Shown here in pieces: positions 31,353-39,991 of a stretch of DNA of 64,000 bases. Each line of letters starts with the position of its first letter. Within the stretch, counting starts at the first letter, position 1. Source of the stretch: Paraphysomonas bandaiensis (Eukaryota; Protista; Chrysophyceae); contig CBFFRP010000136.1 in NCBI GenBank assembly GCA_965644295.1, forward strand, positions 124,001 through 188,000. The letters are read 5' to 3'. The position numbers and the translations under genes were made by a program. Below the pieces are notes generated by a model. The model was given only the letters and a program-made list of their open reading frames with translations. It was not told where the DNA came from and ran no database searches.

Positions 31353-32366
31353 TTAGTTGTGACGTGAAATTATTTTAGACTAGCACACCTTGATTACAGT
31401 AAATAACATTTTTTACACAATATTTGTCTACTAGAGGAGAGTTTTCCGCTGCATCAGTGTACAGAATCATTCAACATAGTTTTACTGACGATCACTTCTT
31501 TACATGCCATCAGCATACTGACTTACAGCGAGCCATATTCTTTGAGGGTATATTATATATTACACGGCGTTGTCTAGCGGATAGGGTGATAGGGTTGACA
31601 GTGTTGAACACTATTTAACCTTTTATGTATATTGTATATATGTGCAATGTTTTATTGTTTTATAATTCATGCGCGTAGTACGTTGGCGTGACAATAAGCA
31701 TCATGTCTGAAATTTATTTGAAATGCAGCATTACAGTTGGAAATAAGCAGCTGAAAAATGTTGATGTGCGCTGTTACTATTGTTGACACTGGTATGGTGT
31801 TACAACAATTAAAAGTAAGCAATGCTAGACAAACTATGACACAATTTTCATTTTGAAAGCGAGGCTTGGCAGAAACTTTATATATATGGCTAATAAATGT
31901 ATTAGTGCTACAAAATCAACAATCAACGACACTACAGGTTGATTTGTACGTTGTAGAGCAAATAGCTGGAAACAATCAAATGCCACCAAGTGTCGAAATG
32001 ACACTTTTGCTTTATGTAATAATACACGATTAGAATTTATTGACCTCTAACCAAAGGTACATTCAGTAGGGAAACGTCGAAGCTAAGGAGGTCATGCTTG
32101 CTAGTGCTTTGGGGCGGTTCAGAATATTTATGTATCAACAGCACTGATACTGAAAGACTCACTGTCTTATGAGTTGTTATGGCCGTGCTGTGGTGGCTAT
32201 GAAACGCAGTCCAATTTTTTCTACTGCTCAGCTCTATATGAACTCTTCGAATGAACAAAGCGTAAATGCGAACTAAACGTAAGTATTTCATTTCCGTGTT
32301 ATTATGTAGATGATATATAATATCGACATCAACCTAATACTCCAAGTATTCCTACTCAAGAATAAC

Positions 32367-33933
32367 TCAATCATTCTCTACTTGTTTCACCTTCTCTCCT
32401 TCCCAATTCCTCCACTCCATACCCTTCGGTGCTTGTTTTTCATCTTCGTAATTCTTTTCCCCAACCTCCTTCCAATTAGTGGAGAGCACAGTACCTGTGT
32501 TACGCAACATCAATGGGCAACCGTACAATACACAAGCAGAATACTGACCGCCTGATGTTTGAAAGGACTTATTCATTGCACGTCTCGTGTCCTCGTCTGC
32601 CTTGGCATATATGTCCCGGAACAGCGTTTGAAGTGCTTCCTATTTACAATAATATTAGTTCACAGATTACAATACTCATGGCATCATACCTCTCCTTCGG
32701 GCTTCTCCTTCTCCAGTTCATCCTTGATCTCGTTTTCAATCTTCTCCCAGTCCCTGTGGGAAGCGTATGGCTTGGGCTGAATAAACGCGTACCATTAAGA
32801 CATTGGAATGACGTATCCACGCATGCATTTGCACACCCTACACGTTTATAACAAAACAACTCATGGAATGTACACTACCTTCTTGACTTGCTCCGTCGTA
32901 GAGGTGGGAGCACGACGTACTGCCGATCCCTCCAGACTCGACCATTCTCCCTCTGCTGCTTTACGTAGAATCACTTCCACCTGACAGTAGTTGATACATG
33001 AACTGCGTCGGAGCAACAAGTGTGCACACATTTCCACCAATATATGACATGCTGAAATAATTCCTACCTTAGTTTTCTTTACTGCCACTCTACACTCTTC
33101 TGGAACAACGGCCGCAAAAAGAGGCTTGTCGAATACAACCACTGCAGAGCAAATGAAATAAGCCGTCCGTTAAATAGACGTATGTGTGGGTGGCACTCAC
33201 CTTCTGCACCATCTTGCATGACGGCAATGCGGAGGTGCTGCGACTGGAAGTTCACCAACGCATCAGACTGCTGAAGATTTTTAACCAGTACGGATATGTT
33301 GACTTGTGAAGAGGACTGGTAGTACTGGTATCGGATTGAGGGCAGCGCAGAAGGAGCAGGAACAGGAGCCACCACAGGCTTCTCGGGCTGTGGAGGAGGA
33401 GGCTTGGAATCCTCCAATTCTGACCAATGGAAGACGGAATTACATCTCAAAACACACAATACTTTCCCAATCACACCTTTTAACTCCGAATCACACTTGC
33501 GGATCCATCGCATGTTCAATACGCAATCTTTCCCCTTGTCGGCACGCAACTTCTTGGATATCTCAAAGCACTTCTTTGAGCTTTCGAATTCATCCAATTC
33601 AAACAAAGCACAACCCTTTCTGAAATAACTAGGCTCGTGATCAGCATTGAGGGATATAGCTCGATTACAGTCCTGTGCAGTGTGATCACTCCATGGGCTC
33701 ATAGACGACACAGACACACATACCTCTACAGCCCGTGAATACTGTTTCAACTTTAAATGAGTTGAAGCTCGACAGGCATAAAGAGGGGCAAAATTAGTGA
33801 GTGTTTGAGCGGCATTGTTGTAGTGCTGTATAAGAATTAATACACATCATACACACACATACATACACACCTCCAGAGCGGCTTCGAACTCCTCATCTAT
33901 ATATAGAACATTACCGTTATTGAATTGCTCCAT
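32367..33933 (-). CDS. SGT1: SGT1 Hsp90 co-chaperone (TPR-CS-SGS), multi-exon
   Basis: TPRs, CS domain (IRYQYYQSSSQVNISV) and SGS domain [51 protein letters not shown] after splicing. Confidence 0.95.
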
Positions 33934-34463
33934 TCCTCTCTGTCTGTAAGGGTGATTATCAATCAGATGGAAGCAACTGTACTATAAGTGAGAGGTGGGG
34001 TGGTGATTCTATTGGACTGTTTGTATTGTGATCCTCTGCAGATGGGTGTGTACTGCTGTATGCTGCATGAGTCGAGTGTCGAGGTGTGTACGTCTAGAGG
34101 TCGAGAGTGTATGTATGTATGTACATGGTACAGCTGTATGAAGAGTTCGAGAAGAAACGTATTCTGTATTCCTCTGTAGTGGAAGCATCTCTGACTCACA
34201 GCTGCTGCTGTATATACATGATGGTACTGCATACAGTATACAGCATACAGTACATGTATACACAGCTCTCCATACTGTACATGTATGCGGTATGATGATC
34301 ACCTCATAGTATACACTGCTGTATACATGGCTCTCTGCTCTGCTCTGCTCTGCTCTGCACATACATATACCATATACATACATACATCTCACCTCCTCTG
34401 TAGCTCATACTCTCATATCAATCCACTTCCACCCTATTAATCACTCTCACCACAACACCACAC
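33934..34463. promoter_or_regulatory. Putative bidirectional promoter (SGT1 / b5-fusion gene)
   Basis: 530-bp head-to-head spacer; GTATGT-rich left half, CATACA-rich right half; CTGCTGTA at 34053, 34205 and 34316; short (CTCTG)n run. Confidence 0.6.
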
Positions 34464-36194
34464 ATGGCCTGGAAACGTGGAACACAGAATAACTCAGCAG
34501 GGGAGATCCGTAAGGGCCATATACGTGAATTCCTCGTATCCTCTAGTAAACAGAGGGGTGTGGTCGGTCAACTCAAGATACTGGCTATGGAAAACACACA
34601 GTTTATTAAAGATTTTGGTGAAGGATACTTCGCATTGATCTGCTCAGAGACGAATGGATTACCCTCTCAGTTCTCTCCATATGTTGATAAGAACGTCATT
34701 CATCTGCACTCTCATGATCATCCCAGGTACACACACACACTCGTTGCAATGAGATTGTAATGCTTTTGTAGATGTGTCCTTTCAGCTCTAATAAACGATC
34801 AAGTTCCGAGAGGCTGTATAGTGTTAAATGAGATTCAGTGCTTAAACTCGAAGGTCTGCGTTGGCGAGTTGGAAGACTGGACTGTCTATCAGGGGGAAAG
34901 TTTTACATATGATGGTCGGGAGGGAGCAATAGGAGATACTGAAGTTCGTTATGTGGACCGACCTGTGCCGTCTTTACAGACTATGGCGATGTGGGTGCGA
35001 CCACGTTACCCGAATGCATCCGATTGTGCTCCTGTGACTCGATTAAATGGTACCACTTTAGCACAGCATATCCAACGGTCGCTTTACGGCGCTATTGTGT
35101 CTGCGGATGAGGTATTTCAAGTCACCTTGGAGGGTGTTGCGGTAGTGTGTCGCGTAGGTGATATGGAAGCTGCTGGAGAGGAGGAACAAGAGGAAGAAAC
35201 AGACATATGCATGCCGGATTGCCATAGAGGTGTGGTGGACGTGGACACTGTAAGTTCCTTGGTCTAATTCCCTCCGATGTACTAATAATATGCATAGTCC
35301 GTTTATTTGTGGGTAGAAGGAACACCCCCAAATTTCGAGTTGCATGATAATCCCATTCGGTCCACTAATCGTGTTATCGCAAACGTGGTGACGGTGTTGA
35401 GTTCTGACGATGAACTTTTCCCCGTAAAGCGCCGCCTACTCCGCCCTTGTATATCTCTCACATCAATAGTTCAAGCAGGACGAGGCAAGTACAAAGATGA
35501 TGAAACAAAGGACAGGCCAGATGAATGGGATGTGCGCGTTCCAGTTGACGCCTGTACCTTCGATAGGGTTTTGCTGTACCTTGAGCATGAGGCACGTGGG
35601 GAGCAATTCAAGTTCGACCCGCTGATAGCCCCTGAGCTTCTAGAGGCCGCCCAGTCACTGCAGGTGCGAGGGCTACAGGAGGCTTGTGAACGAGTACTAG
35701 GAAGTTTTGAGGAACGTGTTCGTCGCACACCTATCCCCTTGCAGGAGGTTATAGATAGGAATGAGCAGGGTAGGCTAATGGCAGAGGATCCGTCTAGACG
35801 GGGTAAACGGGGGGACACCCTTCTCATCATGTCTGGCATGGTGTGTTTGTAAATTTCAGAGCTTTACGGTGTTACATATTTTTGTTTTCTATAGGTACTG
35901 GACATAACGCGGTGGTTAGACGAGCACCCTGGTGGATCAACCATTATCCCGGAGCAAGCACTGAATATGGATTGCACCGCCTTCTTCGAGATATACCATG
36001 CCAGTCGTCAGTCTTTTCTTTATTTGAAAGAGTTTTACATAGGTGAGCTCTCTGAAGTAGACAAAGAAAAGGTTCCTCTACCGCCAGGCGGAGCTGTGCC
36101 GTCACCTGCGTTCTTAGAGCAGCTGAATAGAGTAACCCCGTGGAGACTTAAGCAAGAGGATTTACAGAATTATGTTGTTCATAAATCATTTTAG
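34464..36194 (+). CDS. Multidomain protein: NSF/CDC48-N-like domain + Skp1/BTB-like domain + C-terminal cytochrome b5 haem-binding domain
   Basis: b5: VLDITRWLDEHPGGSTIIPEQALNMDCTAFFEIYHAS..LKEFYIGEL (both His ligands). Skp1-like: VLSSDDELFPV..VDACTFDRVLLYLEH..ELLEAAQSLQVRGLQEAC. The N-terminal part resembles the two NSF N-subdomains. Three GT-AG introns. Confidence 0.75.
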
Positions 36195-36838
36195 TTGCGA
36201 TTCGTTGATAGTTATGCTTTATCCATATATTTCTGATGTGTCATATAAAAATGTTTATTATTTGGAGGAAAATGGTAGGAATTGTGCTTGGATTAGCACG
36301 TAGTGAAGGTTTACTCAGCTGATGAACACTCCGAAATGCCGAAATGCACAATCTAATTCGAATTCTCTATTGGAAGCATTGCAGTTCTGTTTTCCTTAAC
36401 TTATTACTGCTTCGTAAAGCTATACCGTAGTTAACTTGAACTACATCAGTGTTATAATATGTAAATAATGTTGATTGATTGTGTGATTGACAGTTGACCA
36501 TTGAATAGGAAGTATTCTAAAAGCAAGCGTATATAGAAAAAATATATTACTTTATTTCAACTACGGCTATTACATAGTTATACTACATAAAAATTCTACT
36601 GCGCATTAATAATTAATACTGCACTTAAATATCTACGACTAATAACGTCCTGCTACGTAGCCGCAAAAATGAATAAGCTGTTTACATGTTTACATGCACC
36701 AGTCACACAACATATCACGTGAAAGAAAGGAAATCAATACACTGTTCAAATCCGGCGGTGTCCACAAATCTACTACGTAATACAAGTTATTCTATCGAGA
36801 ACTATAGACAGGCAAATATAATTAATAGATATCTAGTA

Positions 36839-39800
36839 TCAAGTATCCGTTAATTCGGAAATCATTGATGAATCATTCTTCGAGCGTATGCCATGTTTTA
36901 TTCGGAGGCTCTGTTTCGAGTACGACGGATATCTTGCAGACACACCTGCGTAGACGTTTCCTAAGTAAAAGTACATAGAGACTGGGTCAGTGTCGTCCAC
37001 ATACTCTGACTCGACTTCCAGTTCCATCGTGCTGCGCGTTTTATCAACGATTCGAGAAGAAGAACCAACACCCGTTTGAGTTTCGTCTAGTGCTAGAAAA
37101 CTGTTGTTAGTCGAAAGAGACCAATCTAACGAATTGTTAGCGCTTCTATCTATGGTCGATGTGAGACTTTCGGTGTTGGCAAGCAGCCCACCCAGCTTAA
37201 AGTACTTTTCTAACTCGGGATCACTTTCCGTAAGCGCAGTATCGTTCTCCTCTATATCGAGTTTTATTTCATCATCTATCCTAGAGTACTGCAAAACGGA
37301 CTTAGGTTCAGGGAGAGGAGTATCCACAGCTGTAGATGTAGCAATTTCTGAAGATGAGACTGCACGGACAGCCACTTTGACTGGGGTTCGGCGGCGGCGG
37401 CTAGGAGGTGTGATTGGATTGTCATTTCTTGAAGAAGCAGATTCCGTCGAAACAGTGGAATTCACAATTGTTTCGTGGTGTTCGGATGCCTTTATTGGAG
37501 AGGGACTTGGCACAACGTCTCTTATCTCAGGTGATTTTTTATCAGGTTTGATGCGAACAGGAATACGGGATCTCTTACCCAAACTTACCGGTTCATGTTG
37601 CATTCTAACCTCACACACCGGAGTTATTGGGTCGCGCGTCGGAGAACTTATCGCATCAGTTTTCTCGTCATACACACAATTCACTGAAACACTGCTTTCA
37701 ACGAAGGAATTTTCAGCACAATTTTTATCAGCATCGTTATCCGATTCATCCGATGGTACATCACCGACATCCAATAGTTGCATTAGTCCAGCATGCGATA
37801 CGACCTCTTCTTCGCCATTCCCAGGTGTAGAAGTCGTGGATCTTTGGTCCGGTCGTATCTTCCGATTCTCATCGTCCAGTCGTTTCATTGCTGCTGCAAC
37901 ATCTCCCGACAAACTAGATACAAAACATTGCGCTTCATCGGATGCCCTGCGAGATGACTCGGGCTTCTTTTTCGCACTAGCAGCTGTTCTCTCTCGCCGT
38001 AGCCTTTCCATTTCCACTCGAGATGCAGCACGGGCGGCCTCTTCTCGCTCCTTCAAACACTCCATCATGTTGTTGACAGAAGATACAAGTTCCTCGACGA
38101 ATAAGTGTGCATCACCTGGAGGACCCAGGGGTCGGCCGTTATTGTATATAATTACTGGAGCTTTTTTCTGATTCGAGGAACGATCCAACCCAGAAGGCAT
38201 ATCTCCCTGTGACGCTTGTGGCACACTTTTCCGGGGAGTTACTGGACTCACCGATCGTTTGGGTGCAATAGTAGAAGTGACTACAGGTTCCGGAAGAGTA
38301 TCTACTTCAGCCTCACATTCCACATCCCGATTTGGGGAACTAGTTGCGTCATATTGACTTGGCGAATCCTCGAAAGGTGGGGACACAGGTGGAGAGGCTG
38401 AACTGGTTGTTGGAGACAGTATTTTCACTAAATCGGATGACCTCACTCGCCGCTCCGGAACACGCCTCTCCCCTATAGGAATATACGGTGGTACCACGTT
38501 GCTGGTGTTACCTCCGGTACTCCTAGCACGTACGGTAGCAACCGAAATATTTGAAGATTTCTCGACGGCTGGTGTCCGAAGTTGCATTTGAATTTTACAC
38601 TCTGATAAAGTTGACGCTGAGGATGATACTGATTGAGTTGTTGAGACACTCTCCTCACTATCGGACACACTGTCGATCACAACAGGTGCCTCTGACTCTC
38701 CCGGAAGAGACGCAGATGAAAGTACGACTGCATCAGATTCTTCATCTATCGATTGAGGTACAGAATTTCCTGGCACATCAGGAGAGACACAGGCGTGGGA
38801 AAAGGAAATTGTGGGGTTGGGCTCAGGGCTCTCTTTCCGGTTCAAGTCCATTTCAATATTCTGAGAAATATTATCCCCCTCATCAATATTTGGCACACTC
38901 TCCTTAGCACAGTCAATGTTCGTTACAGTCTCCTTATCACTATCCATATTCGATGCATCACCCTTGCCATAATCCACATTTTGGACTGGCTCCTCTCTAC
39001 CATCAACACTCTTCGCAATGTCGTTGCCCCCATCACTGTTCTCCACAGTGCTTTTCCCCCCTGAAAAGCCTGAAGGAGACGGTGTAGATGTGTCCACATA
39101 CAGCGGAGTGATTCCTTGGGGACTGAGGGTGATGCGGGAAGGCTTTACTCGCGGAGTGGGTGATGGAAGTGGAGATGTAATTTGTCTGGCAAGTTTGCTA
39201 GCCCTTCTGCTCGGTGATATCGCCCCCTCGCTATCATGAGCACTAAAATCGTCTCGTGATGATTGGGGAGCATCCATGCTGTAACTAGAGCCCTTCAATT
39301 CTCTATGGGTCTCGCTGTTGGTCGAGTTTATAGTCCCCATAAGTCGATGAATTCTTTCTCGCAGTGCTTCCCCTTCAGGGTCAGAAGCTGGTGCGATGTC
39401 ATTGACTGCTGCAGATGTAGTCGGTGGAGGGGTGTATCTGAAGACTTCTGTTTGTTGGGAGTCCTCCTCAACATGTGCATGTCCACCGCTCTCGATATGT
39501 TCTAGAGTATCTAACAAGCTAGCTGATGCAACCGAGCTCTTTTTCGCGACAGTTGTGGGCAGCGCCAATGTGGCCTGAGGAGCAGCCTCCTCGTTAGTTG
39601 AAGATGCTGCGCTGAACAAACTCCTAAAACTATGCCCAGAACTTTTCCCTTTGGACATTGATTTGTTGGCCAGTTCAGACTTTATAGGCTCTGGCATGGC
39701 AGCTGTTGGGGACTCATTTGCATCGTCCCATTCTGAAGATCGCCAGTCTTTAAAGCTCCCTTGAGATCTTAATTTTTTCGGAGCTTTCTCTGTACTAGTG

Positions 39801-39991
39801 TCGTCACTGAAATACGATTCTGATGAAGGGATATTACTCGGCTGAGCTGATAGGCGTGACGGTCGTTCGCTCTGAGCTCTCTGAAATAATGACTCCGAAG
39901 GAGGATCACTTTTCTTCGACTTACCGAACAGTTTTGATCGGACTATACTTGTCCATGATTTATTTTTGGTAAGTTTTCCCCTCTTGCTCAT
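36839..39991 (-). CDS. 1050-aa Ser/Pro/Glu-rich, largely disordered protein with a short coiled coil, intronless
   Basis: Uninterrupted 3153-bp ORF, many SP/TP sites, no recognisable globular domain. Confidence 0.85.
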   Translation of the reverse strand: MSKRGKLTKNKSWTSIVRSKLFGKSKKSDPPSESLFQRAQSERPSRLSAQPSNIPSSESYFSDDTSTEKAPKKLRSQGSFKDWRSSEWDDANESPTAAMPEPIKSELANKSMSKGKSSGHSFRSLFSAASSTNEEAAPQATLALPTTVAKKSSVASASLLDTLEHIESGGHAHVEEDSQQTEVFRYTPPPTTSAAVNDIAPASDPEGEALRERIHRLMGTINSTNSETHRELKGSSYSMDAPQSSRDDFSAHDSEGAISPSRRASKLARQITSPLPSPTPRVKPSRITLSPQGITPLYVDTSTPSPSGFSGGKSTVENSDGGNDIAKSVDGREEPVQNVDYGKGDASNMDSDKETVTNIDCAKESVPNIDEGDNISQNIEMDLNRKESPEPNPTISFSHACVSPDVPGNSVPQSIDEESDAVVLSSASLPGESEAPVVIDSVSDSEESVSTTQSVSSSASTLSECKIQMQLRTPAVEKSSNISVATVRARSTGGNTSNVVPPYIPIGERRVPERRVRSSDLVKILSPTTSSASPPVSPPFEDSPSQYDATSSPNRDVECEAEVDTLPEPVVTSTIAPKRSVSPVTPRKSVPQASQGDMPSGLDRSSNQKKAPVIIYNNGRPLGPPGDAHLFVEELVSSVNNMMECLKEREEAARAASRVEMERLRRERTAASAKKKPESSRRASDEAQCFVSSLSGDVAAAMKRLDDENRKIRPDQRSTTSTPGNGEEEVVSHAGLMQLLDVGDVPSDESDNDADKNCAENSFVESSVSVNCVYDEKTDAISSPTRDPITPVCEVRMQHEPVSLGKRSRIPVRIKPDKKSPEIRDVVPSPSPIKASEHHETIVNSTVSTESASSRNDNPITPPSRRRRTPVKVAVRAVSSSEIATSTAVDTPLPEPKSVLQYSRIDDEIKLDIEENDTALTESDPELEKYFKLGGLLANTESLTSTIDRSANNSLDWSLSTNNSFLALDETQTGVGSSSRIVDKTRSTMELEVESEYVDDTDPVSMYFYLGNVYAGVSARYPSYSKQSLRIKHGIRSKNDSSMISELTDT

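Follow-up and report, generated by a model that had tools for sequence, protein, structure and literature searches.

The window analysed in this study is a 64,000-nucleotide stretch of the genome of the chrysophyte Paraphysomonas bandaiensis (contig CBFFRP010000136.1 of assembly GCA_965644295.1, forward-strand positions 124,001 to 188,000), in which an SGT1 gene on the minus strand lies head to head with a gene for a three-domain fusion protein on the plus strand. The product of the latter, referred to below as the fusion gene, combines a region resembling the N-domain of NSF/Sec18 with a Skp1-type POZ domain and a cytochrome b5 domain. An earlier interpretation made from the letters alone (hereafter the sequence-only reading) had proposed the two genes to be a client and co-chaperone pair forming a haem-responsive cullin adaptor. 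The features of the locus, in window coordinates, are as follows.

32367-33933, minus strand: SGT1 gene, 9 exons, encoding 353 amino acids (aa) with TPR, CS and SGS domains
33933-33871, 33825-33724, 33672-33477, 33419-33201, 33141-33068, 32980-32879, 32776-32690, 32639-32549 and 32494-32367, minus strand: SGT1 exons, from RNA contig joints
33934-34463, no strand: divergent spacer, 530 bp between the two start codons, low-complexity
34464-36194, plus strand: gene for the three-domain protein, 4 exons, 527 aa, from RNA contig joints, translation and collinear homologues
34464-34726, 34772-35249, 35298-35840 and 35895-36194, plus strand: exons of the fusion gene, from RNA contig joints with GT..AG ends
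34551-35249, plus strand: NSF/Sec18 N-domain-like region, about aa 30-247 with approximate bounds, split by the intron at 34727-34771
35379-35720, plus strand: Skp1-type POZ domain, exon-3 residues 28-141, three strands and helices corresponding to Skp1 residues 1-130
35733-36050, plus strand: cytochrome b5 domain (Pfam PF00173), split by the intron at 35841-35894
36051-36194, plus strand: conserved C-terminal tail, ending in KSF

Both gene models were built from contigs of four RNA-type runs aligned to positions 32300-36300. The SGT1 gene starts with the ATG at 33933 and ends with the stop codon at 32367-32369, and its eight introns of 45-102 nucleotides (nt) all have GT..AG ends in the spliced contigs of the four runs. 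The fusion gene extends from the ATG at 34464 to the stop codon at 36192-36194 and has three introns of 45, 48 and 54 nt, again with GT..AG ends; it is single-copy in the genome. The two divergent start codons lie 530 bp apart, in agreement with the positions and the spacer length given by the sequence-only reading. Strain-level differences were also seen in the RNA contigs: at 32368, those of runs X1 and X5 have T for C, by which the SGT1 stop codon TGA becomes TAA, a silent strain difference, and those of run X9 deviate at 35789, 35800 and 35936 within the fusion gene.

Transcript contigs on the SGT1 side extend to approximately 34000 and those on the partner side start at approximately 34421, while the depth over approximately 34042-34309 is 0 in all four runs, save for a value of 0.71 in one run over 34042-34175. 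Since the contigs are separate and none crosses the middle of the spacer, the two genes give rise to two separate transcripts from a divergent spacer. Spliced transcripts of both genes were present in all four runs, a statement of presence only, as contig depth does not rank expression. The spacer carries a (GCTCT)n run at approximately 34330-34358 and stretches rich in TGTA/TACA between 34100 and 34400. Within it, positions 34326-34365 were masked as a repeat in the RNA contig alignment, and run X2 contained an unusual joint that runs backward, 34502 to 34377.

The sequence-only reading had correctly recognised the minus-strand gene as SGT1; by its sequence it codes for an ordinary Hsp90 co-chaperone of this family, whose members bind Skp1 through the TPR domain and Hsp90 through the CS domain. 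The spliced translation is identical to that of P0245, a 353-aa MMETSP transcript whose precomputed domains comprise TPR (PF00515, PF13181, PF07719), CS (PF04969) and SGS (PF05002), and Pfam searches with the exon pieces recovered CS (E 5e-7) and SGS (E 1.4e-9). The gene therefore has the whole TPR-CS-SGS layout of SGT1 (SUGT1) in canonical order, and no unusual feature was seen in it. The SGS domain occurs at one locus only in the 62.6-Mb genome, which makes SGT1 single-copy.

The 527-aa fusion protein itself was not found in the protein collections searched, the closest entry being P0158 with 62% identity over residues 1-527, and the full-length structural model was therefore made for this homologue. 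The model (524 aa) has a mean predicted local distance difference test score (pLDDT) of 87 and a predicted template modelling score (pTM) of 0.77, the latter suggesting that the three domains pack together as a compact unit. Searches of single exons against Pfam and NCBIfam returned no match for the N-terminal half, only a sub-threshold BTB match for exon 3, and recognised the b5 domain alone, so that the fold assignments given below depended on family profiles and structural models. Both ends of the protein are conserved. The N-terminus has the family motif MAW.RG..NN.AG.IR (window 34464-34540) with a nearly invariant N9, which is disordered in the model (pLDDT 32-39), and the C-terminal tail has a consensus end KSF (36183-36194) in which S523 and F524 are nearly invariant in the homologue alignment; on sequence grounds, the two resemble short motifs for docking or sorting.

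The N-terminal region was assigned by two approaches that gave the same answer. A full-length family profile matched the NSF N-domain (1qcs) with an E-value of 1.1e-5 and also matched the Sec18 N-domain, and the best 50 Foldseek matches to the P0158 model were all NSF/Sec18, with a best E-value of 9e-11 and TM-scores by target of 0.73-0.78; rows of the ESM Atlas agree with this assignment. The two-subdomain fold is shared with NSF/Sec18 at approximately 10-13% identity, but the fusion protein differs from those proteins in having no AAA ATPase domains: none of 37 homologues had a Pfam match for an AAA ATPase domain, and the POZ domain follows the N-domain instead. The sequence-only reading had described the partner gene as coding for a Skp1-like haem protein; the fusion of a POZ domain to a b5 domain bears out that part of the description, which had missed the NSF-N-like domain preceding them.

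At the C-terminal side, the cytochrome b5 domain was recognised by Pfam PF00173 (E 1.4e-8; score 35.1 bits, cut-off 23.7) and by a comparison of the family profile with b5 structures (E 2e-22). Residues H435, P436, G437, G438 and H459, which make up the HPGG motif and the second histidine in YHAS, are invariant in 75 homologues, and no transmembrane tail or membrane anchor follows the domain. From these features the b5 domain is predicted to be soluble and to carry both axial haem histidines. The HPGG motif and the two invariant histidines are common to cytochrome b5 and known b5 fusions such as microsomal b5, flavocytochrome b2 and plant RLF, whereas the canonical GHS around the second histidine is replaced here by YHAS, with the histidine one position off in the HMMER alignment. 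The fusion protein also departs from the usual arrangement in its partners, which are non-enzymatic domains here and a reductase, desaturase or oxidase elsewhere, and in having no tail anchor.

The resemblance to Skp1 had been drawn from two peptides, LSSDDELFPV and ELLEAAQSLQVRGL, both of which are indeed encoded in exon 3 (35298-35840). Exon 3 of the fusion gene, modelled with AlphaFold2 (mean pLDDT 85), shows three strands and the expected helices, and Foldseek returned Skp1, Elongin C and BTB structures as its top matches with a probability of 1.0. Structural re-alignment (VIA) superposed the model on residues 1-130 of human Skp1 (Z 13.5, root-mean-square deviation (rmsd) 2.1 Å, 99 residues) and on the BTB domain of Sgt1-bound yeast Skp1 (5an3_D; Z 13.1, rmsd 2.0 Å, 96 residues), and the best 50 VIA entries were all Skp1, with Z between 12.4 and 13.5. 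At the level of sequence, a family profile made from 76 domain segments and searched against all PDB sequences gave 31 matches, 30 of which were Elongin C, Skp1 or BTB-domain proteins, with marginal E-values (0.005-0.02 for Elongin C over residues 3-100, and 0.02 for Skp1). A HMMER comparison with the organism's own Skp1 picked out exactly the two stretches that had been flagged, which fall on strands 1-2 and on the helix AANYLDIKGL of Skp1. The two proteins also have in common an acidic loop ahead of strand 3. Taken with the structural models, these results uphold the Skp1-like segment as a real POZ fold of the Skp1 type.

Pfam misses this POZ domain entirely. With the Skp1_POZ model (PF03931), exon 3 had no match up to E 1 and the 37 homologues had none up to E 0.01; the same model does detect a canonical Skp1 on contig C421 of this genome. 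The C-terminal Skp1 domain (PF01466) had no match either, the structural likeness stopping at Skp1 residue 130, after which the b5 domain follows. For BTB (PF00651), exon 3 reached 12.2 bits where the cut-off is 20.5 (E 0.21), over the last 26 profile positions only, and two of the 37 homologues matched at E <= 0.01. The middle domain is thus modelled as a genuine Skp1-type POZ fold, yet it stands outside the Skp1 and BTB families as Pfam defines them. Compared with Skp1 itself (human 6c16, yeast 5an3), the SCF adaptor that binds a cullin N-terminus and F-box proteins, the fold is the same over residues 1-130 at 15-20% identity. Skp1, however, exists on its own, with approximately 165 aa, and extends past residue 130; the POZ domain here sits inside a 527-aa multidomain protein in which the b5 domain takes that place.

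At such low identity, the likeness to Skp1 might be no more than a shared small alpha/beta fold of no functional meaning, with the domain acting as a structural spacer or oligomerising part of a b5 electron carrier in lipid or sterol metabolism. POZ folds often just oligomerise, a local hhalign comparison of the POZ family with the organism's own Skp1 was non-significant (125 columns, 20% identity), and several members of the family bear the automatic Joint Genome Institute (JGI) label 'cytochrome b involved in lipid metabolism'. This label, however, is a generic one given automatically to b5 domains, the fusion protein has no membrane anchor, and two surface motifs of the POZ domain, D.E.FPVKR.LLRPC and TFDRVLLYLEHE, show very strong conservation between oomycetes and diatoms, far beyond the needs of a spacer; we judge this explanation unlikely. 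Conservation of this kind suggests either a conserved binding partner or contacts between domains that are themselves conserved.

A conserved partner could be the protein itself, a redox client or a cullin. In the last case the protein would be a substrate receptor or adaptor of a cullin-RING ligase acting independently of SGT1, with the POZ domain docking on the cullin in the manner of Skp1, Elongin C or BTB proteins, the NSF-N-like domain picking the substrate and the b5 haem gating the activity. The closest structures (Skp1) and the best profile matches (Elongin C) are both cullin adaptors, the strong conservation of the surface motifs would fit a docking role, and the N-domains of NSF and Cdc48 bind adaptors or substrates. 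Elongin C, the Cul2/Cul5 adaptor, is the best sequence-level relative, the profile spanning nearly the whole protein including the loop that matches SGPGQF, with TM-scores by target of 0.67-0.71 in Foldseek; the fusion POZ domain differs in having one further helix after the Elongin C-like core. Several observations nevertheless make a cullin receptor unlikely. The POZ domain stops at the equivalent of Skp1 residue 130 and is without the last part of Skp1, which helps to hold F-boxes, and Pfam assigns it neither to BTB nor to Skp1_POZ. Where the AANY stretch of Skp1 has N and Y, which we take to be Cul1 contacts, the aligned positions vary in the fusion family, a weak indication. Additionally, the high pTM of the full-length model suggests that some of the conserved surfaces are intramolecular interfaces.

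The family to which the fusion protein belongs is sizeable. A search with exon 3 of 1.84 billion representative sequences returned 217 relatives at E <= 0.001, mostly of 450-600 aa with the match at approximately residues 250-450, and the full-length ones are collinear with the window protein. The named members are all stramenopiles, namely Pelagophyceae sp. CCMP2097, Chrysophaeum, Aureococcus, an ochromonad, the dictyochophyte Rhizochromulina, the diatom Proboscia and the oomycetes Phytophthora, Pythium and Plasmopara, and their annotations go no further than hypothetical or "cytochrome b5 domain" protein. The family occurs among diatoms and pelagophytes, which are ecologically dominant algae, and among oomycetes that attack crops, and it may reach beyond the stramenopiles. 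The literature search found no paper on the family, on PITG_04850 or on a b5 domain fused to Elongin C or Skp1; the single modules are well known, and the combination of an NSF-N domain, a Skp1-type POZ domain and a soluble b5 domain was found in no paper. Knowing the partners of the protein might uncover an adaptor, linked to redox state or haem, that is particular to stramenopiles.

Three further observations on the family are recorded here. Abundant distant members occur on long marine metagenome contigs of up to 456 kb; one related 500-aa Cyt-b5 cluster in the ESM Atlas is auto-labelled 'commonest Chlorophyta'; and the orthologues at six loci from several other lineages (L001, L002, L005, L006, L007 and L008) are single uninterrupted open reading frames (ORFs), as opposed to the three short introns of the gene in the window.

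Conserved synteny of the SGT1 and fusion genes had been set beforehand as a test of the proposed functional pairing. Loci of fusion-gene orthologues were collected by an exact look-up of homologues and a scan of metagenome contigs, giving 62 loci (L001-L062) that were searched by tblastn with SGT1. None of the 62 contained a match at E <= 0.01, and the best stray match had an E-value of 0.3 in a search extending to E <= 10. In 22 of these loci, at least 2.1 kb of sequence is available upstream of the orthologue start, which leaves room for an SGT1 gene placed as it is here, and SGT1 is absent from all 22; after removal of duplicates, they are estimated to represent approximately 14-15 lineages. 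As a positive control, the same tblastn search found the SGT1 orthologue in a further locus (L065) with 49% identity and an E-value of 4e-126. The reverse comparison was made at this one SGT1-orthologue locus, where the fusion gene is absent from the 15.9 kb surrounding SGT1. No conserved linkage was found in either direction, which is the first of the outcomes that the sequence-only reading had listed as refuting it, and the adjacency of the two genes in the window is most likely lineage-specific and incidental.

The same result bears on the proposal that SGT1 and the fusion protein are co-regulated, the TPR domain of SGT1 binding the POZ domain and bringing Hsp90 to a cullin adaptor that responds to haem or redox state. 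This would be a rare functional gene pairing in a eukaryote, but the evidence does not back it. Several features of the locus are compatible with it: the Skp1-type fold superposes on the Sgt1-bound yeast Skp1, the two genes have a common divergent spacer and spliced transcripts of both appear in all four runs, the acidic stretch before strand 3 is present as in Skp1 (PMC5282575), and with a single-copy SGT1 the adjacency is improbable a priori. Against these stand the absence of SGT1 near the orthologue in the 22 informative loci, the negative reverse comparison, and the details of the interface between Sgt1 and Skp1.

In the yeast Sgt1-Skp1 structure, the interface lies on helix 2 and strand 3 of Skp1, with salt bridges at K30 and D35 (PMC5282575). 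The genome of P. bandaiensis encodes a canonical Skp1 on another contig (C421, 88429-91515), assembled by hand from GT..AG sites as three exons coding for 167 aa and ending in the usual WCEE-type tail, and this protein retains K and D at the Sgt1-contact positions; it is the expected partner of SGT1. In the fusion family, by comparison, an ungapped hand alignment in which the hydrophobic pattern is kept puts T or S at the equivalent of K30 in 75 of the 76 members and A or S at that of D35 in 61 of them. The contact residues accordingly appear to be replaced across the family, a residue-level reading that is tentative because hhalign places helix 2 slightly differently from the hand alignment. 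The SGT1 TPR region (residues 1-122 of P0245), predicted in complex with the POZ domain (residues 24-146 of exon 3), reached 0.04 where the mark is 0.34, a score that counts neither way. With no conserved linkage, a canonical Skp1 encoded elsewhere and the K30 and D35 equivalents apparently replaced, the client and co-chaperone pair put forward by the sequence-only reading is very unlikely.

Overall, we consider it likely that the locus holds two independently transcribed divergent genes that came to be neighbours incidentally in this lineage, and that the fusion protein is a soluble haem adaptor in which SGT1 has no special part. The gene models and their transcription, the domain folds, the conservation of the family and the missing linkage are established, and the mechanism is inferred. 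The fusion protein would most likely be a soluble haem protein whose b5 domain may act as an electron carrier or as a haem or redox sensor, while the N-like and POZ domains may mediate the docking of partner proteins or self-association. In this arrangement the protein could act as an adaptor.

Some points weigh against this account. The orthologue loci compared are all distant, the 22 informative ones having 34-54% identity to the window protein, and the relatives at approximately 60% identity (P0158, P0160, L010 and L019) are represented by transcript-sized or short contigs only, so that the absence of linkage is a result for distant relatives. SGT1 is single-copy and the fusion gene is the only non-Skp1 gene seen with a Skp1-type POZ domain, while at least 14 other loci of the genome match Pfam BTB; with a single SGT1 gene and few BTB loci, a POZ-fold neighbour of SGT1 is unlikely a priori, its prior chance being well under 1% by a rough figure that was not computed and that assumes approximately 25 POZ-fold genes among approximately 17,000. 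A physical interaction would also be compatible with missing synteny. The improbability of the adjacency is itself post hoc, having been remarked in a scan of very many windows.

A more far-reaching possibility is that the fusion protein is a stramenopile invention linking a haem b5 sensor to the machinery of ubiquitin or of chaperones, a haem- or redox-gated degradation adaptor whose POZ domain would dock on a cullin or, like Skp1, be held by SGT1-Hsp90 while the NSF-N-like domain selects the targets. An adaptor of this kind has not been described in any eukaryote, and we regard it as very unlikely here.

Downstream of the fusion gene, a minus-strand ORF at 36839-39991 lies tail to tail with it, running uninterrupted for 1050 aa and encoding a low-complexity product rich in Ser, Pro and Thr.

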